Assembly: GCA_009103225.1 (NCBI GenBank)
Contig: RHPI01003330.1
Span: 524,730-588,729 of the forward strand
Length of the DNA stretch: 64,000 nt
Direction: 5' to 3'
DNA from: Chlorokybus atmophyticus
Lineage: Eukaryota > Plantae > Mesostigma and Chlorokybus algae
Position numbers and translations under genes: made by a program. Numbering within the stretch: the first letter of the stretch is position 1; every line of letters starts with the position of its first letter. The notes under the pieces were generated by a model. That model was not told the origin of the DNA and did not search any database. It saw nothing but the letters and a program-made list of their open reading frames with translations. Below, in pieces: positions 15,150 through 40,975 of the stretch.

Positions 15150-16608
15150 GCACTTCACTAATGAGATAGTCACTGCTGGCTATTGAAAGACATATTGCGC
15201 GCTGAAGTTAGATTCGTTGAGTGATACTTGCTACCTGTTGCTCTGTTTTTGGCTCGTAGCGTTCTTTAGCACACGTGCTTGTGTGTAGCATTGCGCATCA
15301 CCTGTTGGCATCACCTGGTTGCTCCGAGGAAACTTGCAGTTGTGGCCGTGCTGCGTTGCTGGTGAAGTGTGCATTGCGCTTTCACAACCGTTCAAACTGT
15401 TGGTTGCACAGCAACAGAGTATCTGTCGTGACAGCCACGTGATTAGTGGTCGTCTGCACCTGATGCATGCATTGTGCAGCTTGAGAGAAGCCCAGGTCAT
15501 TGTTGCTTAGGAGTGAGTATGATGGTCTTCTCTATATCTTTTGTTCTTGTACCCGGGTGATCCAACATGTGCCCAGCAATTGCAATGGATGAAGCACAGT
15601 CCAGGTCTCTTGGTATAGGCTGCTCTTGTCATGCAGTAATGTGCACACGTATACGCAGTAGTAGTTTCCCTCAACAATGGTCATCACAGACCATGTACAT
15701 GAAATGGTGCATGTGCAGTACAGCGGTCTCGCTTTCAGCACTGTTCTTGCAGTGACTTTGAAGGCACAACTGATAGGCATGTCCAACTAGTACTTACAGT
15801 GGTAGTTGTCGCATTATCTAGCACTCGCAGTGTTGTGACAGCTGTAACACTACTCGTTTAGCAGTGATATTGGGGCAAAGGTGCATGGTCGTTGTGTACA
15901 CTGCATGTGCCCCGCTTGGAAGCATTCAATTACATATGCCTACTACAAATCCCCTACTTCCGACACACCCCACAGTTGTTGTCGACGCGCTGATGGCACA
16001 GGCCTAAACTTCAGCATGCAACCATCCAGAAGTGTACATAAGCAAACCTAGCGCGTCTACCGACGTGATGCTCATTATAACCCATAGCCCGTGGGTGACG
16101 ACGCTCACACAGAGTCACCTCACATACTCGCCCATTCATCTTCCTCACCTCAGTCCGGACTGGGCGTGGACATGTGTGAACCGTAGTTTGATCTCAATGA
16201 CACCATCACACAGCCTTCGTTGCGCTAACTCTGTCGCACAGCACGCCTCCGCCTGTTTCGCATCATTGGGGCTGTGCTGTAGCCTTCACACTGCCGCCAA
16301 GAGCTGCATCCGATCCGTGGTTGGCGGGCCTGGGCCATAGGGGCCCAAAAAGACAGGGCCCGAACTGGTGTGTGCCGCTGGTAGCGTGTTGTCATGGTGC
16401 TGCTAGTTGCAATTGGTGCTCGCTGACGGCGTGAAGTAGATGTTGTAGATGGTTGTGGTGTTGAAGATAATGTCGCAACTACTGAGCTGTCATCATGATT
16501 GTCGCTTTCAGGAAATGGTGAGGTTCCAAGATACCTGTATAGACAAGTGCAGCTTCCCACTGTGCACCTCGTGTATGATGCACATGGAGAGAAAGGGGGG
16601 AGGGGGGN

Positions 16609-17021
<413 letters not shown>

Positions 17022-17359: not shown

Positions 17360-19167
17360 TCAGGAGGCAAACACTCGAGCCAAGCCAGCAGCAGCTTGCC
17401 CGCAGATGGGACACGTCCCGTCGCAGAGGACAGTGTTCCCGCAGGATTCGCATGCCATGTAGTGCATGCAGGGCGTAAACGCGTGTGTCCGATGGTTGGA
17501 ATGGCAGATCGCGCAGAGCTCCCTCTGGCTACTGCTGCTGGCTGCAGCGGGTTGGTGCCCTGCATAGAGCAGTAACGTTAGCAGTGCTCCGTTTGTGTAT
17601 CAGCTCACCGCTGAGAGATAAAACAGAGGGCAGCTTCCTTCTTTACAGAAGGCGATCGCGCACACATATGTGCGCGAGCGCACACCTTGGTATGTGTGTG
17701 TCACCAAACAATGTGACTTAGCAGGAACATCTGGCAAACACCTGACCAGCGGCTCTCAGTGCTGACCGGCTGGTGATGAGTGCGTGGCCTCGACAGAAAG
17801 GGACACAAAGAACTGCGCCGCCTGCTCGAGCATGCGGATCACCGTCATTTCCGTGGTGTAGTCGTGAAAAACCGTGCTGTGAGGGCAGTCCCCCGCGCAA
17901 TATTCTCTCAGTGTAAGGTTGCCGCAGAAAATTGTGTCGACCTGTGTCACTTGTTTCAGCGCTGACTCAGCCTCCCTCCTCTGAGGCAGAGTCATGTTCA
18001 GGGGGCAATTGCCAAACAGTATCACCGGCAACGGCCCACCTGCAGCCAAGACAAGGTCATGATCAAATGCCTTGTCGTGAGTAAATGCACCAGTGATTGA
18101 CCACCAGATGCAAGCCGTAAATCCTGAATGCATAGATGCAACTGTCATAGATGTTTGTGTCATCAATCAAAAGACCTGCTTGGTACATAAGCGGTGGCGA
18201 TGAGACCTTACCGATGCGCTGCGGGTTGCGAAAATGAGACACTTGTGTGCAAAGCTCCTCGCCATAAACACCAGTGGGAAAGGACTGCATTGCGATACGC
18301 AACCCCTCCATGTCGACGACAATAATGATGACGTCCGCGCGGTTCTCCGGGCAGTCTTCAAGAGTGTAGTTCAGCCTGTCGACAGTTACCTCCCTGACCC
18401 CCTGAGCCCACCGCTGCAGATCGGCGAGGTCCACTGGGGTAACACGTTTGCCCGGGGTGTCAATAAGCCTGCACATATTGCCGCTGAATTGCTGATAGCA
18501 GAGGGGCGTGTTTGATACATAGCACCTGCACTCTACAAATGTGCGTGTAGTCTGCAATGCAAACGGACCTGAACCGGGTGCGTTCCGAAACATGACACTT
18601 GGGGTACAGCGTGCACTCCCTGGTTGCGTTGCGCGACCCGGTTTCTGCCACGTTCACAGTCTTCCTGCACGTTTACAGAGAGCAGTGGTCAGCAGCAGCG
18701 CCTGGCAGGCAGATGCACAGGCCTTGGCGGCAACGACTTCAAGTTGCCTAATAGCACAGGGACGAGAACCAAGCAGAAGCATGAGACTACACGATCCTTT
18801 TGTATGCTGTCACTTACATGACTAAAAGTGCCTGACACAAGTGAATGACCATGACCACGCAGCAGATCAGAGGAGACAGACAAGAGAAAAACCGATTACT
18901 GCAGTGCAGTGCGAATGCCAGCTCTAGCCCTACCAAGCACGTTGCTCTCTCTCACCCGTCAATGAGTCTAAAGATTATGTTGGTTGCCAAGGACTTGCCG
19001 CTGTGCTGGCGACCGACCAGCATGGTATTGAAGGGGCGCGCCTGTCTCTGAAGGTTTCTGCCATGACCGGACCTGAAGGCCTGGACAGCTCTGTCAACAT
19101 CTTCCGAGCTACTGCTGGAGCGGCGGCACTCGTGCTTCGAAGGCTCCTTGCCCCAAAACCACCCCAT
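17360..19167 (-). CDS. IFI44-like P-loop GTPase + C-terminal RING protein, copy 1 (intact, 345 aa)
   Basis: Exons 19167-18956, 18664-18569, 18468-18212, 18039-17767 and 17559-17360 (1038 nt) have GT-AG ends and no internal stop. G1 GRQHSGKS, G3 DTPG, PVILFGN; RING CAIC-x11-CMH-x3-CESC-x9-CPIC, ending RVFAS*. Confidence 0.85.
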
Positions 19168-19748
19168 GCTTGCTAGTCTCCTTCTGAGCAGCAAAAAGGC
19201 TTCGGCCAGAGAAGTCTTCTGGCCACTGATACACACAGTGCAATAGGCCTAGCACCTTCTCCCCAAGTCTCTTCTCCCATTCCGCTTTGCTCCGACTACA
19301 TCTCACGTGCTTCCCACACCTTGTAACTGCTGCCACATGCAGCATGTAAGGCTTAGGGGGCAAGGTGCCCCATCTTTCATGCATTTTCCAGACAAAGCCA
19401 GGGTCATACAGGGTAGCGGCTAGATGCGGTAGCAAAATAAAATCACTTGTTGGCCAAAAGCTGTCAAAACGTAACTGTCGGTCACCAGGGCAGGTGTGTG
19501 ACCCTGCCTGACACAGCCCTGTGCAGCAGGGCAGCTGCGTTAGGGTCTAGATAGCGAGGACTACTACCGTAGGCTACGGTCCGTCGCGCCAGGGAAGTAC
19601 TCACCGTTAGAGTGCTTCAATGAAGTCAACAACAATTCAACGAGCTGGTCAGCTGAGGCACTTCTATTCTATTGCGCGAGTGCCCACACGTGCAAGAATC
19701 GGTGTAGCCTCATGCTTCTGCTTTATGCCGCCCCCCTCCCCCCCCCCC

Positions 19749-19828
19749 NNNNNNNNNNNNNNNNNNNNNNNNNNNNNNNNNNNNNNNNNNNNNNNNNNNN
19801 NNNNNNNNNNNNNNNNNNNNNNNNNNNN
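19749..19828. other. Assembly gap (N run flanked by poly-C)
   Basis: Ns in sequence. Confidence 1.
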
Positions 19829-19939
19829 CCCCCCCCCCCCCCCCCCTCTCCCCGTGGTTGTTTTGAGATGGAAGTCTTTACCGCTGATACCTGTGCACCT
19901 GCCTAATGATGCTGCCCATCGCTCCCTGTTAACGTGCAA

Positions 19940-21070
19940 GAAGACATCAAACGTTGCAGAAACCGGAATGCGCTGTGGACCCACGGCGTGCACGCGTTAC
20001 CCCAAGTGTCATGTTTCAGAACACACCCAATTCAGGTCCGTTTGCATGCGGTGCGCGCACGCATGTACAGTGCAAACGTTATTTCAAAGACAACCGTCTA
20101 GTATGTCAGCAATCCGGCTATGTGCAGAGTTACCAACACCCCAGGCATAGATGGGCACGCAGCTGCCCTCGCCCACCTGCAGCGGTGGGCTCAGGGGGTC
20201 AGCACGTTCACCACGGATGGGATGAACTACAGCGTTGAAGACTGCCCGGAAAATCACGCAGACGTCATCGTTGTTGTCGTGGAGATGGAAGCGTTGCACA
20301 TACACAGCGCAGAGCACTCCTTTCCCACTGATAGTTATGGCGAGGATCTCCGCGCACAAGTCTCTCGTTTCCGCAACCCGCAGCACGTCGTTAAGCTCTC
20401 CACGTGACCGCTTATGTACCAAGCAGGTCTTTTTCTTGGTGACACAAACACTTGTGATAGTTGCAGCTAACACTCTGTGGTTAAAGGCTTGCATTTGTCG
20501 AAGACTGGTGCATTTACTTGAGCTTGTGTTGGCTGCAGGTGGGCCGCTGCCGGTGATACTGTTTGGCAATGTCAAATGGAGCATGACACTAGCTCAGAGG
20601 AGGGAGGCTGAGTCAGCTTTGAGGCAAGTGACTGCGGTCGACACCATGTTCTGCGGCAACCTCTTGCTGACAGAAGTTTGTGCGCGGGACTGCCCTCACA
20701 CTACGGTCTTCCATGACGACAACACACAAGTAACGGTCATCCGCATGCACGAGCAGGCAGCGCAGTTCTTCGAGTCCCTTTCTGTTGAGCCCACGCACGT
20801 AGCATCAGCCAGTCAACACTGAGAGCTACTGCTCAGGTGTTTACCTTCCGACACATTGTATTGTTGAGTGACATGCGCACGTGCGCGCGCAGATACACAC
20901 CTCTGTAGCCATCTTCAATCTCAGTGAACAGTGAGCACTGGTAAGCGTTGCTGCTCTACGCAGGGCACCAACCCGCGGAGACGAGCAGCAATATTGATCA
21001 GAGGGTATGCTATGCGTGATCTGCCATTACAAATGCCGGGCGCTTGTTCACGCCCTGCATGCACTGCATA
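19940..21070 (+). pseudogene. GTPase-RING copy 2 (pseudogene, lacks exon 1 with the P-loop)
   Basis: Homologous exons 2-5 are present, but the exon-2 acceptor reads CAA, DTPG is NTPG, the exon-3 donor reads TTAAG, and the RING exon is frameshifted and truncated. No exon 1 lies upstream although intron-1-like sequence precedes the gap. Confidence 0.8.
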
Positions 21071-21494
21071 GCATCTGCACCACTTGCTTTATTGCTTTAT
21101 GTTGCCACTCTCCTCCAAGCCACGACAAATAGCTGTTTGGCAGCAAGGTAAACGCGGAGTACATTGTACAGTAGTATCATGGTTGCATCATATAGTATAG
21201 TATGCTTTGATAAGATACATAGTATAGTAGTTCCATGCCTGTGGCTGATTGGGTCATGTCCAGTTGCACCTACATTCGCGCAAAGTGTTGACTGATGCAC
21301 TAGTGATGCGTGATTGAAGTATGCAGAAGTATGCAGATTGCATAAATATCCTATACCATGCGAACACTATACAACTGTACAATTATACAATATACTCCGT
21401 GTTCAGATCACTGCCAAACAGCTATAAATCTGGCTCGGAAGAGGCTGGCAACACGAAGCAGAACGACCAAGTTAGTGGTGAACACTCCTTCCTG

Positions 21495-23288
21495 TCAGGA
21501 GGCAAACACTCGAGCTAAGCCGGCAGCAGCTTGCCCGCAAATGGGGCACGTGCGCCGGTTGTCGTCGCCGATGACGATGTTGGCACAGGGTTCGCATGCC
21601 ATATAGTGCATGCAGGGGGTGAACGCGTGCGTCCTGCGATTGGTCTGGCAGATCGCGCATACCTCCCTCTGGGAATTGCTGCTGCTCGTCTCCACAGGTT
21701 CATCCCCTCCTGCAGGGAGCAGCACGGTTAGCAGTGTTGTGTTTGTATATCAGCTCACTGCACAAACACTGCAATCACAAAAAGGACAGAGGGCAGCTAA
21801 GGTGTGTGCGACGTACGGTACACACGTACGGTACACCAGAAAAACACGGGTTGGCAGACATATGTGGTAAACACCTGACCAGCAGCTCTTAGCGCTAACC
21901 GGCTGTTGGCGTGTGCGCGGGCTCGACAGAAAGGGACTCAAAGAACTGCGCCGCCTGCTCGAGCATGCGAATGACCGTCACTTGCATGTTGTAGTCGTCA
22001 AATCTTGTGTTGTGAGGGCAGTCCCTCGTGCAAGCTTCTGTCAGCGTGAGGTTGCCGCAGAACATGGTGTCGACCTCAGTCACTTGCCTCAACGCTGCCT
22101 GAGCATTCCTCCTCTGAGCCACAGACATGTTGGGGGGAAAATTGCCAAATAGTATCACCGGCAACGGCCCACCTGCAGCCAACACAAGCTTAAATCTATT
22201 CGCCTAAGTCCCTCGTGGTGATTGAGAGAACCAACTTAGGACTGATTATAGGGCCTTAGACCTCAAAACAGAGCTCACAAGTTTTATGTTTGTGTCACCA
22301 ACAAAAGACCTAACTATGCAAGCGGAAAGGTGGAGATCTAGAGCTTACCAACGCGCTGCGGATTGCGGAAGTGGGAGACTTGTGCGCGGAGATCCTGGAC
22401 ATATTCACGATTGGGAGAAGACGTGGTTGCGCTCAGCAACGTCTCCATTTCCACAACGACAATGATAATATCAGCACGGTTCTCCGGGCAGTCTTCAAGG
22501 CGGGAGCCATCTCCTATCACCACCCTGACTCCCTGAGCCCAATGCTGCAGGGTGGCGAGGTCAGCCGAGTTGCCATTTTTACCCGGGGTGTCAATAATCC
22601 TGCAAATAAAACTGAGTTGCTGATCATGACGTAATATAGGGGCATTTTTCAAAGACAAGCAACCTGCCCTGTACATGCGTGCGGACACGTTCAAACAAGT
22701 AGCGATGCATATGAACCCAAATCGGGTAGTTTCTGAAATATGACAGGTGGGTAACAGCGTGCACTCTTTGTCGTTGTGGCGCGCCCCGGTTTCTGCCACG
22801 TTTGCAGTCCTTCTGCATGTGTAGAGAGAGCAGCGGTCAGCAGCAGCAGGCACTGGCAGATGCACAGGCATTGGCAACAACACTTCAAGTTTGCTAAGAG
22901 CACAGGGATGGGAACAACTGGACGAGCATGAGATGACCATGGTTTCACAAGGACCATCGCGCTTGCTGACATTCACACATGACTTGCACTGCGCTAAACT
23001 GAGCTAACCAGAGAAGCCAGATAAGAACAGAAGCGGTCATCTGCAGTGCAATTGGCCAGCCCAAACCCTACCAAGCATTGCTAGCTCTCACCCGTCAGTG
23101 AGTTTGAAGATTGTGTTGGTTGCCAAGGACTTCCCGCTGTGCTGGCGCCCGACCAGCATGGTGTTAAATGCGCGTGCCTGTCTTCTCCGGTGACGGGACC
23201 TGAGGGCCTCCACAGCTTTGTCAACATCCCCCGAGCTGCTGCTGGAGCGGCGGCACTCGTGCACAGGCGAGCTTGGTTTCTGCCCCAT
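21495..23288 (-). CDS. IFI44-like P-loop GTPase + C-terminal RING protein, copy 3 (intact, 343 aa)
   Basis: Exons 23288-23092, 22812-22717, 22599-22349, 22172-21900 and 21709-21495 (1032 nt) have the same intron phases as copy 1. MGQKPSS start, GRQHSGKS, DTPG, and RING CAICQTNRRTHAFTPCMHYMACEPC...CPICGQAAAGLARVFAS*. Confidence 0.87.
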
Positions 23289-24705
23289 GCTAGCTAGCCC
23301 GCACCCCCTTCTCTTCAGATCGCAGACCCTTCTCCCCAACTCGCCAAGCCTTAGACCCTTCTTTCTAAGTCTCACAGGCTCTTCTCCCTCCCTTTCACCT
23401 TGCCGGCTGGGCTTTACAACAAGTGCTGGCCCACACAGCTCCTCAGTACAACTGCTTGTTGCTTGCAGGCATGCCCCTTTATACCCGCTTAACGTGGACA
23501 TCTGTTCTGGCCAGACAGATAGCTTGTAGAGTTCTCTGGATATCACTCTATGCCTGCCTGCATTGCCGGATACGAACATGGCCCTCAGCGATATCGGACC
23601 GTCGTGACAGGTAGAGACTCAAAGTCCTCATCAACGTCATCTGTGCTTAGTAATACCTTACGTCACCACCGCTGTCAGCTGTACGTGACCAGTTGTCGTA
23701 ACGGCACGCGATCAGATGCGTCGTTGGCACCTTCACCAATAAGCACCACCGAATGGCAAGTGAGAGATTCACAACTTGCTGATCCTTTCATAGACTTCTC
23801 ACCACATCGACAGCCAGCGCTGCAGTAGCACAACGCATTGTGCTCGACTTAACACTGTTACGTTCTATTCCACGCATGCAACATTGCTCCCATAACCACA
23901 AGCAATGGACAGTGATGTGCTGCATATCTTGCATGTCTTGTATTGAACGTATTGCATGCAGCTGATACATGCATTGCATGCAATATGATCGTATCATGTA
24001 GCTGCACGTAAGGCGACTTGCAAAGTATTCGGACGGTGGGGGTCCCATTTGTTTGCGAATGTGAGTTGATTATAGACTGTTCCAGAGTGCGCTGCAGTCC
24101 GGCCTGATTCTGCATGCCGAAACCAAATCTGTGATAGTCCTGCATTTCGGATCCCCCAGCAACAATAAGTGGCAACCCAGAACGACACCTGCCCTTTTCT
24201 GGTAGCCCAACCAGCGCTGAGTGATAAGAAGGGTAGCGTGGCTGGTTACATGATCACGGTGGTGATGTGACTGCTGTGGTGCACGTAGTGCTGAAACGAC
24301 GCAGCAACTTACTAAGCACCACAATGACGGTGGTGCGTACCTTCTTGCACCCTTTGGAAGGGTGTGGGGTTGCAAGAAAGTACGCTTCACGTCATACTAC
24401 TGCTGCGTTCCACGTCATGCTACTTTTTTTTGTTTTACGGTGAAACTGTTGCCTACTGATTCCAACCTGTCACCAATTGGATGAGACCCAAATGGCTGCA
24501 CCGCACAAGCAGCCGATTGTGGTAGTCCTATGCTCAACTATTGCTCTGAATGAATGGCTGCGCATGGTGGAAAGTCAGCCCATTCGGCAAGTGGTGGCAA
24601 TGCTTAGCGGATGCAACGCTTGAGAACGATGCTAACCTGCGCAGCAACTCGCGCTATTGGGGCCAGCCAGCCCATATCTTAGTGTCTCCCTGAATGTAGC
24701 TTTCC

Positions 24706-26343
24706 ATGGATGCCGTGACCACTGCAGACGTTCACTTGCCACAGCAGCCGATGATAATGAAAGGCCATCCCAACAACTTGTATTCGGGCTCTTCATTTCC
24801 GCCATTGCCGTCACCATCAAACCGACATAACAAAAACTTATGGCTCTGGGCGTGGCTTGGCTGCACTGCAACTGTAGCTGGCTGTCTCGCGCGGTGCTGC
24901 TGGTGAGTAAATCTTGCTGCTTTTGTTGGCCAAGCTGCTTGCTTGGCATTCCAGGGCTGTTATGCATTGGTCTGCACATAACACACGCACAACGAGTGAC
25001 TATGGCATGCCCGCGCATGTTGGCCCAGTTACAGATATGCGTACATACACTATGCAGATATGAACAGAGGCACACATGCCGCAGGTGGCCTTGTGCCTCT
25101 TTTCATGACTGTGTTAGCATGTCTGTGTCTGTGCATCTACAAGTGTGCCACGCATGTATGTGCAATGCATATACATCTGCCCAAGCACACTTGTGTGCTG
25201 AAATGCATGCGTGCCTGCACGCATGTACATGCACGCAGCTGCAGTGTGCTTAAGTTGCGAGGGCTGGGCGTGCATTTCACAAGCTGTGCATGCGCGTGCG
25301 TGAGTGCATGGATGCGTACACCGCACATGTACGAGTAGCAGACTTTCTGTCCCCCTCATATACAAGGACAAAAAACCGCCTCCACCTACCGTACGCATGC
25401 AGGCGCATCGTCGTGCGCCTCCTGCGTGCTGTGACCAGAAACCCTGCTTTTCTGTTCAACAGTGGGAGGAGTAAGCAGCGGAAACTTGAGGCACCGGACT
25501 CTCGGCTTCCCTCATCCGGGGTTACCGACATAACCAAAAAGATGCGCGACCCCACTTGGTCGCACATAGACCACGTGCTGGTGAGTTCATGCATGTTTTT
25601 CGCAGCGAGTGAAAAATGCACACGCACATATGTACCTTTTCTTGACACACTCACCCCCGTACGCGCGCAACTGACTGGACACCACCGGCAGATTTGCTGT
25701 GAAGACGCTGCGAGAGCTCAAGACCTAGGACGTGCCCTCGGGCTGGACTGGCAGCACTACGGCCCGGCTGCACCTGATTCAGACAGGTACTCAACATCGA
25801 TTTTTGTAAAAGTGATGCATGTGCCATGTGTTACGTGTCTACTCGGTGTGCTTATGGTGCGAAAGTGTTGGCAGTTTTGCTCTGGAGCCGGACTTGAAGC
25901 CATGGCTGGGGCCCAGGAGCGCTGCAGTGATGCTGCTGATAGCAGACAACCGTAGCAACTCCTGGTGTGATCAGCGCCAGTACCCTCAAAACAAGAAGCT
26001 CCTCGACTGCCTGGTCAAGACCACGCGGGATACTGGAGGTGCAGTCCCTTGATCAAGTGAATCTTTGCATAGAAACACCATGCGTTGACTGAAACATACA
26101 CTTGTCCTGTGTATGTATCTGTCCTTCTTGCAACTTGTCTCCCACCCAGCACCATTAGCGGCGGTGGTGTATCCGGTGCTACCGGGAGCGAGGGCGCACT
26201 GGCGGAGGTACGGGGCGATGCAAGTGCAGTCGAAGGACTGGCCGGAGGAGTTTAGAGGCAAGACCTTTGAGTTCATGCCATCAAACTTGGATGAGGAGGA
26301 GAGGAGTTACATCCGCATGCAACAAGCATTGGTTGCAACTTGA
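24706..26343 (+). CDS. Uncharacterised protein with GNAT-like C-terminal domain, copy A (intact, 255 aa)
   Basis: Exons 24706-24902, 25463-25580, 25692-25786, 25875-26038 and 26150-26343 (768 nt) splice in frame. Domain SAAVMLLIADNRSNSW..RQYPQNKKLLD..PLAAVVYPVLP.ARAHWRRYGAM is conserved in copies B and C with codon-type substitutions. The GNAT call is inference. Confidence 0.75.
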
Positions 26344-33675: not shown

Positions 33676-35373
33676 TTATGTAGTTGCAGCCAGCACCTGC
33701 TGCAGTCGGTTAAACTCACGTTCGTCGTCATCATACTCAGTCGGCATGTACTTAAAGGTCTTCTGCCGCAGCACTTCCGGCCATTCCTTTGACTGCACTG
33801 GCATCGCCCCGTACCTCCGCCAGTGCGCCCTGGCTGCGGGGAGCACCGGATACACCACCGCCGCTACAGGCACTGGGTTGGCAGATGGGAGACAATGTTG
33901 GTGTGGCTATAAGGAGAGAAACTACCACGTGAGAGTGCACCTTCTGTGGCTCCCGCAATCAGGAGGTCAAGCAGCTTCTTGTTGTGAGGGTACTGGCGCA
34001 TTCAAACCATGAGTTGCTGCGATTTTGTGCTATCAGCAGCAGCACTGCAGCGCTCCTGGGCCCCAGCAATGGCTGCATGAAGTCCAGCTCCGGGGGAACA
34101 CTGTTGAAGGATGTTACAACGTCAACTGACAACAACTTTGACGAAACATTATGTCAAGTACAGACCTGTCAGATTGAAGCACAGCCGGGTCTAGGTGTTC
34201 GCATGTCACTGAGTTTGGCAGCCCGAGGCACATGGCGCGTGCTAGGTCTTAAGCCCTGGCTGCGTCCTCACAGCAAACCTGCCAGTGGTGTCCAGTCAGT
34301 TGTACGCGTAAGAGAGTGAGGCAACACGCAATACGTCTGTGCGTGTGTGTTTTCCTCACTGCGGAAAAAATGCATGCACTCACCAGCACGTGGTTGATGT
34401 GGGACCAAGTGGGATCACGCATCATTGTGGCTATGTCGGGGACCCCGGACCCCGGACGAGGGGAGCCGAGAGTCCGATACTGGTGCCTCATGATCAAGAT
34501 TTCGACGCTTTCTCCTCGTACTGTTGAACAGAAAAGAAACAATCCTGGTCACAGCACGTACGAGGCGCAGGACGACTCGTCAGACATCGGATGCTTGCGC
34601 ATGCATATTGTAGGTAGAGGAGGTTGCATGTATATGTTGGAGAGAAAGCTAGATACTGGTACTTGTGTACTGTATGCACTCATGCACTCACGCTTATAGG
34701 GGAAAACAACTTGTTGAACCCACACAACTCGTTCACACCAACCTCCACCCATGCCCGCACCCACACACCCAAGTGTGCTTGGGCGGCACGTGCAGTGCCT
34801 GCACGCATGATGCGTGCAGGCACTACACGCATACAACTGTGCTTAGGCGTCTGTATGTGCATATGCACATGGTGGTGTACATATACAGCACGGGATCATG
34901 CTGCACATGCAAGCACATGCACACCCATGCACCGTGCATGGGTGTGCATGTGTGACACGCACACATGCACGCGCACTCGCGCACACAGACATGGACAAAC
35001 ACGCGCATGTACACAAACGCATATGCAAATTCGTGTGCATATGGGCGCACGTGCGCGGGCGGGACTCCAAAGTCACAAGTTGTCTCACAACGCAAACCAT
35101 AGCAACAACCCTGGAATGCCATCGCAACAGCCGGGGAGCACTTCTTGGCCAACAGCCTGTTGGCTAAGTTGAGAAACAGCAAGACTTACTGCTTACCGCC
35201 AAGCGATAAAGTCAGTCGCACCTGTGCAACTTGCCTTGAACGTTTCGTCTCACTTCGGTTGCCGACGGCCATGACGATGATGTTGCGCCGGAAGACAGCG
35301 AGTCGCTGGAACGGCCTTTCATCATCATCGGCGGCGGTGGCAAGTGACGGTCTGCAGTGGTCAAGGCATCCAT
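33676..35373 (-). pseudogene. GNAT-like family copy C (pseudogene)
   Basis: Same exon layout as copy A, starting MDALTTADRHLP. Lesions: 7-bp duplication ccggggt, premature TAA where A has CAA (CEDAARA*), and a frameshift before RQYPHNKKLL. The last exon is intact. Confidence 0.8.
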
Positions 35374-36996
35374 GAAGGCTACATTCAAGAGAGACTAACC
35401 TAGCATGCGTATTCAAAGCTTCTGTTTGCCCAACAGAGCAGTCACCTCTAGATCTATGCACAGCAGGCGCCACTGAGCCGGATGGGCTGGCCCCCAAAGT
35501 GCGAGTTGCTGCGCGCGTTGGCGTCGTCCTCAAGCTTTGCATCCGCAAGTACTACTACCACCACTTGCCAAATCAGCAGAGATTCTGCTATGCAACTAGC
35601 AAGTAGCAACAGTGCATAGCATTATCACAGCAGCCGACTTGCTGCGAGTTGCTACGAAGGTTGGGTCGTTCTGAAACTTCTCATCCGCTTAGTACTACCA
35701 TCACTTGCCAAATGCAAATGCGCAGAACATCAGTTATCAATAGCGCGTAGCAACGTCACAACAGGCTTGTAATTGCTTTGCCACTTGGGTCTTGCTCTGA
35801 TTGACTGGTTGACACATGCAACAGATTCATTGTAAGATAAAGCAGTGACTTGACGTGGAGCGTATTTTCTTCCCTTCCAGACCCTTCCGGAGGGTGTGGT
35901 TGCCAACCCCACTTTTGTCGCAATTGTAAGAAGGTACGCTGCACGTCATTGCAGTGCGGTTGGCTAAGTCGCTACGTCACATCACCACTACGCGACCACA
36001 GCAGTCACATCAACATTGTGATCACGTAAGCAGCGGCCACGCTGCCCTTTCCTCACGTAGCTACTAGTATAGCGCTGGTCGGTCTATCAGACAACGGCAG
36101 GTGCCATTCTGGAATACCTCCTTCCAAGTCGGAAGCCCATTGCTGCTGGGAAGTCAGCCATCCAGGATTGCCCCAACTTCGTTGTTGGCTCGAATCCAGG
36201 CCGGACTGCAGCCCAATATGAGGCACTGGAACAGCATGTAATAAAGTTCACGAACAATTAGTACATGCAAAACGAATGTACATACATGTAGCTACATGCA
36301 ATACGTTCAGGAACGAGCCATGCAATACACGCAACGTGTTACCATCCAATGCTTACAGTGCTGGGGAGCAATGTTGCATGCATGGAGTAGCAGGTCACTA
36401 GCAGTGCTAGTCTAGTAGCACAGTTCATTGTGCTACTGCTGCAGCGCTGGCAGTTGGTGTGGTGAACAATTTCTACGACAGCGACAGAAGTTGTGACTTT
36501 CTACTTGCCATTCGGTGTAGTGTTGCTTATTGCGAAGGTGCCAATGACGCAACCACAGCGGCGAGGTACGTAAATACCAAGCACAGTTATTGCGGTTGCG
36601 ATTAATGAGGACTTGAGTCTCTGAGGGGTTGCGCGAAGGTTCTCCACGGCCTGTCACAATGGTCAGATGTCGCGCTGAGGGTTATGTTATTATCCGGCAA
36701 TGCAGGCAGGTAGAGGGTGACATCTAGAGACCTCCACAAGCTGTCAGCCAGGCCGTAACAGATAACGACGATGTCAAGCGCATAGAAAGTGGCGTGTCAC
36801 ACGCGACTTTTCATCTGTTGCAGACGGTCTGCAACAAGCGCTTAGGAGCTGTGTGCGAGGTACTTGCTGTGGAGCCTAGTTGTCAAATTCAAAGGGAGGG
36901 AAAGGAGCCACTGAGACTTGGAGAGGTGGAGAGTAGGGTTTGAGACTTGGAGAGAGTTCTCTTCACTCCCTTTGTACGGGGTGGAGGCTGGCAAGC

Positions 36997-38652
36997 ATGG
37001 GGCAGAGACCAAGCACGCCTGAGGCTCTGCACGAATGCCGCCGCTCCAGCAGCAGCTCGGAGGATGTTGACAGAGCTGTGAATGCGCTCAGGTCCCGTCA
37101 CAGCGTCACAGACAGGCACGCCCATCCAACAATATGCTGGTCGGCCGCCAGCACAGCGGCAAATCCTTGGCAACCAGCACCATCTTCAAGCTCAGTGACG
37201 GGTGAGAGAGACAGCAACATTGGTAGGGTTGGTAGGGTTTGGTAGGGTTGGTAGGGTTTGAGCTGGCTAATTGCACTGCATGTGACCGGTTTGCAAATGT
37301 AAATTTACTCTTATCTGGCTTCTCTGTTAGCTACGTCCAGGGCAGTTTGAGTCATGTGAGTGTCAGCAAGCGCAATAATTGATGTGTCATCTCCGTCACG
37401 GTGATCAATACCTCATGCTTCTGAACGGTTCCCCTCCCCATGCTTCTAGCAAATCCTGTCGCCAATGCCTGTGTATCTGCCTGCTGCTGCTGACCACTGC
37501 TCTCTCTCCACTCGCAGAAAGACTGCAAACGTGGCAGAAACCGGGGTGTGCAACGCACACGGGGACCTAGTGCACGCTGCTACGCACCCGTCATGTTTCG
37601 GAACGCACCCGATTCAGGTTCGCATGCATTGCAAGTTGATTGAATATATGCGCACGCATATTTAGGGCAGGCTCTTTTCTTGAAATGATGCCCCCCAGAC
37701 ATGCCAGCAACTCAATTGTTTGCAGGAATATCGACACCCCGGGCAAAGCTGGTATTCCAGCTGACCTCAACACCCTGCAGCAGTGGGCTCAAGGAGTTAG
37801 GGCGGTGGCTTCAGATGGCCAATACCTTAAAGACTGCCCGGAGAACCGCGCTGTCGTCATCATTGTTGTCGTGGAAATGGAGACGTTGCTGAGCAAAATG
37901 AGGCCTAGATCTCCTCCCATTGGTGTATATGGCCAGCCATCTCCACGCGCAAGTCTCTCACTTCTGCAACCCGCAGCGAGTCGGTAAGCTCTTCACCTTT
38001 CCGCTTGCATAGTCAGGTCTTCGGTTTGATGACTCACCAAACAGAAAAGTGTTGGACATGTATATAGAATTGTAGCTCTGTTTTGGGATCCAAGACTCAT
38101 GACTACTTGCAGACTGGTTCATTCACTCACCACAAGGGACTTAAACTTGTGTTGACAGGTGGGCCGGTGATACTGTTTGGCAATTTCCCCCCGAACATGC
38201 CACTAGATGACAGGAGGGAGGCTGAGTCAGTGTTGAGACAGGTGACTGAGCTCGACACCGTGTTCTGCGGCAACCTCACTCTGAAAGAACTTTGCGATCG
38301 GGACCACCGTTACACATGGTGCACCAAGTTCTTTGATGACCATGACACGGAAGTGACGGTTATCAAGATGCTCAAGCAGGCGGCCCGGATTTTGACCAGA
38401 GTAGTGGAGTGCGCTCCTAGCTTCCTTTGCTGGATCGCCGCGGGCACGCGCTCGTCATCAGCTGGTCAGCGCTGAGAGCTGCTGGTCAGCTGCTTCTGAC
38501 GCACGCATGGCTACATAGCTGCCCTCTGTTCCATCTGTGCTGAGCAGAATTGGACTGCAAACACAACGCTGCTAACTTACGTCTCCAAGCAGGGCATCAA
38601 GCTGCGGAGACCAGCAGCATTGGCCAGGAGGACCTATGCGCGATCTGCCAGA
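36997..38652 (+). pseudogene. GTPase-RING copy 4 (pseudogene)
   Basis: MGQRPST start. Exon 1 (36997-37201) is frameshifted before the P-loop, exon 2 is 100 nt versus 96, and exon 3 has a further frameshift. The RING exon stops matching after CAICQ (~38652). Confidence 0.85.
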
Positions 38653-39068
38653 CGCTCTCGCTCTCGGTGTATAGCAGCAAGGCGTTGGACAGATGGCCGC
38701 CATCTGCGCAGCGTATGAGAATGTCTATTGAATCCTGGTCGGTTGCCTGGCCCTCCAGAATAGCACTATTGACAACAATTGAGTACTGGCTGCATAGGCG
38801 AAGTGAGCAAAGAACAGGCGCACGACGGCGGAGATCCAGAGCTGTAGCTGCACTGGCTGCTATACTAGTGGTACATACCATAAGCAGCTAGCATATGGAA
38901 TTGCCCACCTCTGGATCCGTTACGTTATGTATGGTTACAAGGACATTGTGTGCGTAGTGTGCTACAGTTTCATGCACTAGCAGTTGCGACAGCGCATCCG
39001 CATATTTGCCAGCAGGCTGGGGCAGTATTACTAGTGGTAGTACTACTTTTGTCGAGACATCCTTGCTC

Positions 39069-39617: not shown

Positions 39618-40975
<1,358 letters not shown>

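Follow-up and report, generated by a model that had tools for sequence, protein, structure and literature searches.

Four copies of one five-exon gene were found in a 64,000-nucleotide stretch of the Chlorokybus atmophyticus genome (assembly GCA_009103225.1, contig RHPI01003330.1, positions 524,730 to 588,729; hereafter the window) when the exons of one copy, gene A, were compared with the window by tblastn. Two copies, A and C, are intact and are predicted to encode proteins of about 345 residues in which a P-loop domain with GTPase-like motifs is joined to a C-terminal RING, while the two others, B and D, are pseudogenes. A preliminary description of this DNA, made from the letters alone, had already reported the two intact genes of about 345 codons, and its limits, 17360 and 23288, were exactly the stop of A and the start of C; the third, inverted copy (B), located between A and C, and the dead fourth copy (D) had both been overlooked. 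The copies and their exons, numbered from the first position of the window, are the following:

17360-19167, minus strand: gene A, intact, five exons, 1038 nucleotides, 345 codons plus stop
18956-19167, minus strand: A exon 1, with the Met-Gly start, a Ser-rich leader, strand beta-1, Walker A (GxxxxGKS) and helix 1
18569-18664, minus strand: A exon 2, 96 nucleotides, of equal phase at both ends, with the candidate switch I/G2 Thr and strand beta-2
18212-18468, minus strand: A exon 3, with strand beta-3 and its DTPG (Walker B/G3), the switch II helix, an acidic block and a hydrophobic strand
17767-18039, minus strand: A exon 4, with a hydrophobic strand ending in Gly-Asn (G4 position), Cys-Gly-Asn where G5 would be, and the final helix
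17360-17559, minus strand: A exon 5, with a linker, a C3HC4 RING matching PF13920 and a C-terminal tail followed by the stop
21495-23288, minus strand: gene C, intact, five exons, 1032 nucleotides, 343 codons plus stop
23288-23092, 22812-22717, 22599-22349, 22172-21900 and 21709-21495, minus strand: C exons 1 to 5
19694-21100, plus strand: copy B, an inverted pseudogene without exon 1 and the 5' half of intron 1
19941-20033, 20129-20389 and 20541-20810, plus strand: exons 2 to 4 of copy B, still open
About 37000-38700, plus strand: copy D, a pseudogene with frameshifts in exons 1, 2 and 3, found as a tblastn match

All eight introns of genes A and C are of the GT-AG type and 100-291 nucleotides long, the phases agree at every junction, and the exon totals are divisible by three. 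The only database protein identical to the window was the JGI model Chlat1/5615 (scaffold Chrsp369, 311 residues), which corresponds to gene C minus exon 2 and is 100% identical to the window exons; word searches retrieved no annotated protein for gene A. The JGI model joins exons 1, 3, 4 and 5, and thus connects the RING exon to the upstream exons, which is independent support for the RING fusion. Moreover, within the open stretch of the RING exon no Met comes before the first Cys pair, and this exon therefore cannot stand alone. The connection of the RING exon to GTPase-like exons, as suggested in the preliminary description, was recovered in frame in A, in C and in the JGI model, and the RING fusion in the five-exon models of A and C, which are predicted from genomic sequence, is considered to be real.

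Exon 2, which is absent from the public model, was also taken as real, because its reading frame is open and its phase fits in A, B and C, with equal phase at its two ends, and because it is free of indels, compared with 23-30 gap columns in the flanking introns. In addition, the JGI model of a divergent paralog fragment, Chlat1/5268, located outside the window on scaffold Chrsp33, contains an exon-2-like stretch that runs directly into exon 3, and without exon 2 nothing remains between helix 1 and the DTPG strand. The public model Chlat1/5615 is thus probably 32 residues too short, or else exon 2 (22717-22812) is probably alternatively spliced.

In the predicted proteins, about 45 residues precede the P-loop. 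Every motif listed in the preliminary description was present in the translations of both intact copies. The domain opens with a hydrophobic strand, a canonical Walker A motif and an Asn four residues after its Ser, continues with two conserved Thr residues encoded by exon 2 (the G2 candidates), a hydrophobic strand ending in DTPG and a helix, and closes with an acidic block and a very hydrophobic strand, a strand ending in Gly-Asn, a Cys-Gly-Asn and an amphipathic helix. At the motif level only, G1 (GxxxxGK[ST]), a G2 Thr before an antiparallel strand and G3 (DxxG after a hydrophobic strand) were all found in A and C. The acidic block of exon 3, Cys-Pro-Glu-Asn-Arg-Ala-Asp, is family-specific and is followed by the hydrophobic strand (invariant columns), exon 4 contains 35 invariant columns across the four copies, and the Walker A block, flanks included, does not vary between A, C and even the dead copy D. 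The order and spacing of these motifs are those of a TRAFAC GTPase of the Era/AIG1/septin type.

All copies that have a start begin with Met-Gly (23286-23288 in C, 19165-19167 in A, and near 37000 in D). The leaders of C and D fit the N-myristoylation pattern, with a small or neutral residue after the Gly and a Ser fifth after it, whereas gene A has a Trp after the Gly and does not fit this pattern. The paralogs A and C may thus differ in membrane targeting.

The comparison of A with C gave a rate of synonymous substitution (dS) of 0.51, a rate of nonsynonymous substitution (dN) of 0.18 and a dN/dS of 0.35 (Nei-Gojobori, per-exon counts summed), and purifying selection has therefore acted on both genes during most of the time since they separated. 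By exon, the ratio was lowest in the RING exon (0.15), followed by the P-loop exon (0.25), and reached about 0.7 in exons 2 and 4. Given the invariant Walker A block, this ratio at such a dS and the indel-free exon 2, chance is not a reasonable explanation.

Similarity searches were performed with single exons or with the JGI proteins themselves, of which Chlat1/5615 lacks exon 2. For the C-terminal domain, the zf-C3HC4_3 family anticipated in the preliminary description was matched: PF13920 was detected with E-values of 1.7e-10 in A exon 5 alone and 4.9e-11 in Chlat1/5615 (41-42.7 bits against a gathering cut-off of 27), all eight zinc ligands are in C3HC4 order in A and C, and across 56 relatives none of the eight Cys/His columns varies. 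The best matches in the PDB were cIAP2, cIAP1 and XIAP (E-values of 3e-5 to 1e-4), the next-best solved RINGs being those of MGRN1, MEX3C, MUL1 and MDM2, and the earlier label of an IAP/MDM2-type C-terminal RING is thus correct as a RING type. As in cIAP1/BIRC2, cIAP2/BIRC3, XIAP and MDM2, the RING has C3HC4 spacing, is located at the extreme C terminus and ends in a tail of about 12 residues past its last Cys, in which the residue three from the end is aromatic. The alignments to cIAP2 (3eb5) and cIAP1 (6hpr) reach the last residue of both proteins, and the aromatic residue of the tail is kept. IAP/MDM2-type RINGs act as tail-mediated dimers, and the aromatic residue of their tail is used in dimer and E2~ubiquitin contacts.

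Unlike IAP and MDM2 proteins, the algal proteins have no BIR, CARD or p53-binding domain, and no BIR domain was detected in Pfam scans of the exons and of Chlat1/5615. Judged from sequence, what is shared is the RING type and not membership of the IAP family. Of the proteins with the most similar RINGs, the 56 longest contained 52 Pfam partner families, and no GTPase family was among the 25 most frequent of these; the partners were ankyrin, GIDE, RRM, WD40, UEV and Sel1 domains.

Relatives of the N-terminal domain were few. In a phmmer search of Chlat1/5615 against 1.84 billion representative proteins, 322 hits had an E-value of 0.001 or better, and the best 150 of the 322 matched the RING only, with one exception, the Chlorokybus paralog Chlat1/5268. 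Word searches with the read-through of gene C, with residues 1-245 of Chlat1/5615 and with an exon-2/3 profile retrieved only Chlat1/5615 and Chlat1/5268. In the PDB, searches with Chlat1/5615, a family profile and the exon-2/3 profile returned only RINGs, a septin P-loop (E-values of 0.19-0.44) and noise. In Chlat1/5268, MMR_HSR1 (PF01926) was matched below threshold (E-value of 0.085, 13.4 bits against 21.9), in the right register over strand 2, strand 3 and DxxG. No paper describing this algal family was found in the literature, and, considering the best 150 of the 322 phmmer hits, the family of A and C has so far been seen only in Chlorokybus.

The positive signal for a GTPase-like domain came from protein language-model neighbours. 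In the ESM-Atlas, the neighbours of residues 1-245 were all GTPase clusters (MMR_HSR1, AIG1, DUF815 and unnamed G-domain clusters; 0.90), and those of residues 67-240, which do not include Walker A, were nearly all GTPase clusters as well (MMR_HSR1, AIG1, septin, dynamin-N, DO-GTPase2 and IIGP; 0.79-0.84). This is the one positive, though soft, signal, and by the calibration of the Atlas such neighbours are leads, not proof.

Two further comparisons were made. An hhalign comparison of the family profile with E. coli Era and Der aligned the P-loops only (probabilities of 0.7% and 10%) and was dropped. A recent viral or bacterial origin is not supported, because the profiles of exons 3 and 4 found no relatives in collections of viral, metagenome and prokaryote contigs.

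The preliminary description had called the N-terminal domain IFI44-like. The fusion and the RING type stood, but the IFI44 kinship did not: the N-terminal TLDc domain that defines IFI44 and IFI44L was lacking, no TLD match was obtained at E-values up to 10 in any exon or in Chlat1/5615, and no similarity was detectable among the best 150 of the 322 phmmer hits. Like IFI44 and IFI44L, the algal proteins have a GxxxxGKS P-loop followed by a DxxG-type motif and no canonical NKxD. Unlike them, they lack TLDc and are about 100 residues shorter, and IFI44 has no RING. In animals, the GTP-binding region of IFI44 is itself only "predicted" and was dispensable for the restriction of respiratory syncytial virus (PMC7459546). 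At the motif level, AIG1/GIMAP or Era-type GTPases fit the domain at least as well, and the IFI44 label is therefore unsupported rather than disproved.

Taken together, we propose, with a probability of roughly 0.55, that A and C belong to a lineage-restricted family of nucleotide-switch-controlled RING E3 ligases of about 345 residues, built of three parts. The first would be the short Ser-rich leader starting with Met-Gly; the second, a P-loop nucleoside triphosphatase (NTPase) domain with the Era/AIG1/septin-type TRAFAC motif order, in which Walker A, the candidate switch-I Thr and DTPG are intact; and the third, the C-terminal IAP-type RING, the tail of which is the end of the protein. The nucleotide state of the N-terminal domain would set the E3 activity of the RING or its choice of partners. 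The most likely route would be a nucleotide-dependent dimerisation of the G domain that pairs two RINGs, and it is proposed because IAP/MDM2-type RINGs act as dimers through their tails. Among septin/AIG1-type G domains, many form dimers in which the nucleotide site lies at the interface. Membrane targeting may be added by the Met-Gly start of C, whereas the start of A does not fit the myristoylation pattern.

Several observations weigh against this proposal. Neither Pfam, NCBIfam nor PADLOC assigned a family to the N-terminal domain with any exon, with Chlat1/5615 or with Chlat1/5268, and no sequence or profile comparison linked this domain significantly to a GTPase family. The AlphaFold2 model, built from a six-row alignment, had a mean predicted local distance difference test score (pLDDT) of 41.6 and was unusable, and Foldseek with this low-scoring model returned noise, with no match at an E-value of 0.001 or better. 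Scores as high as those from the Atlas are also obtained with shuffled proteins, in 4-10% of cases. The JGI model omits exon 2, without which the domain has no switch I or strand 2. No [NT]KxD motif, the mark of guanine specificity, is present for G4; the strand at this position ends in Gly-Asn and is followed by Pro-rich residues without Lys or Asp.

G3 is not kept throughout the family either, its Gly being replaced by Pro in Chlat1/5268 and its Asp by Asn in copy B, and some family members therefore cannot be active NTPases. In Chlat1/5268, moreover, switch II is separated from the strand that follows by an Asp-, Val- and Asn-rich insert of about 45 residues, and such family members elsewhere in the genome are probably devoid of nucleotide hydrolysis. 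Finally, a Gly follows the last Cys of the RING in place of the Arg "linchpin" of cIAP, although XIAP also lacks this Arg (Tyr).

The alternative that survives best, while still unlikely, is that the N-terminal domain is a highly diverged AIG1/GIMAP-type GTPase (septin-like clade) with an acquired RING. AIG1 genes exist in plants and algae, AIG1 clusters recur among the Atlas neighbours, one of them from Streptophyta, and the septin mentioned above was the best, though weak, PDB match to the P-loop region. A Thr-x-x-Cys about 20 residues before DTPG resembles the G2-to-G3 spacing of GIMAP proteins. AIG1/GIMAP and Era-like (MMR_HSR1) GTPases share with the algal domain the hydrophobic strand, the Gly-Arg-x-x-x-Gly-Lys-Ser with its Asn four residues on, and DTPG. 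However, all matches to these GTPases were below threshold, G4 and G5 are unrecognisable, PF04548 (AIG1) gave no match even at an E-value of 10 with the exons, Chlat1/5615 or Chlat1/5268, and the family profiles retrieved no GIMAP or Toc structures from the PDB. None of the AIG1/GIMAP and Era-like members is known to be fused to a RING.

It is quite unlikely that the domain is a pseudo-NTPase, that is, a P-loop relic kept as a lineage-specific substrate-binding or scaffold module of an ordinary RING E3. The absence of G4 in all copies, the G3 losses in Chlat1/5268 and B, and the orphan status of the domain at the level of sequence agree with such a relic, but Walker A, the next helix and DTPG are strictly conserved in A and C despite a dS of 0.5, and the dN/dS of the P-loop exon argues in the same direction. 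About equally unlikely, finally, is a true homolog of the GTP-binding region of animal IFI44/IFI44L, which would make an algal IFI44-RING antiviral effector: the motif spacing put forward in the preliminary description points to IFI44, and the top Atlas neighbours include unnamed G-domain clusters (230-400 residues) from chordates and molluscs, IFI44-like genes being abundant in both groups, but no TLDc domain was found, no animal protein matched residues 1-245 among the best 150 of the 322 phmmer hits, and these motifs are matched just as well by AIG1/GIMAP and Era-type GTPases.

The history of the locus was read from a self-comparison of the window, in which the copies appear as segmental duplicates with 66-74% DNA identity. 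The unit formed by gene C and its upstream neighbour (up to about 26340) recurs inverted as the segment 33682-36290 plus copy D. The neighbour itself (23300-26340) lies head to head with C, and its copy at 33682-36290, beside pseudogene D, is 67-75% identical to it; gene A is without this duplicated neighbour. Turnover is visible in the two intact and two dead copies within 22 kb. In copy B, the RING exon contains frameshifts and a stop and has lost its 3' part, and no trace of an exon 1 remnant was found to the left of 19694. In copy D, the RING decays past the first Cys pair. A Pfam match to FIIND was seen in exon 4 of copy B only (20541-20810, plus strand; E-value of 0.013, 15.6 bits against a cut-off of 25.8) and was taken as a chance match.

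One assembly gap lies between genes A and C:

19749-19828, no strand: assembly gap (run of N), poly-C run, within the intron-1 remnant of copy B

The flanks of this gap, 19694-19723 (30 nucleotides) and 19829 onward, are both colinear with intron 1 of gene A on the plus strand, and the gap therefore falls in what is left of intron 1 in copy B. It does not reach either intact gene, the nearest bases of A and C being 19167 and 21495, respectively. Elsewhere in the window, a (GA/TC)n microsatellite of about 400 bp (16610-17000), with a single N at 16608, is located about 360 bp past the 3' end of gene A and gives long spurious Ser-Leu and Arg-Glu open reading frames. A (GT)n microsatellite (39700-39800) abuts another assembly gap (39801-40042), with Pro-rich low-complexity sequence just ahead of it.

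A role in biotic conflict would be speculative, and is suggested only by the lineage restriction and by the gene birth-and-death. The combination of lineage restriction with two living and two dead copies is typical of conflict families, and fits a young dispensable family equally well. An extended version of the proposal, which we regard as a long shot, is that of a membrane-targeted family of nucleotide-switch E3 ligases for cell-autonomous defence, in which a pathogen-triggered oligomerisation of the G domain would activate the IAP-like RING, and which would have evolved in Chlorokybus or been kept from an ancient eukaryotic stock shared with IFI44/GIMAP-type proteins. If true, it would be a counterpart, in the plant lineage, of the GTPase-based innate immunity of animals. 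As it stands, A and C represent a well-defined orphan family of moderate interest, and their compact proteins of about 345 residues would offer a system for testing the nucleotide gating of E3 activity.

Fusions of a nucleotide switch with a RING are rare, and those known, TRIM23, RNF112 and RNF213, have roles in signalling or innate immunity. TRIM23/ARD1 (RING-B-box-coiled coil-ARF) and RNF112/ZNF179 (RING plus a GBP-like G domain) are known GTPase-RING E3 ligases. Like these two and, more loosely, like RNF213 (AAA plus RING), the algal proteins would combine a nucleotide switch and a RING in one polypeptide, and this short series would gain a case if such a fusion had arisen independently in one of the earliest-branching streptophyte algae. 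In TRIM23 and RNF112, however, a RING of another subtype stands at the N terminus, and the G domains are of the ARF or GBP type, whereas the algal proteins have the opposite order, with an IAP-like RING behind a G-like domain that is an orphan. What would be new at this locus is thus a predicted NTPase-RING ligase that unites these three features.

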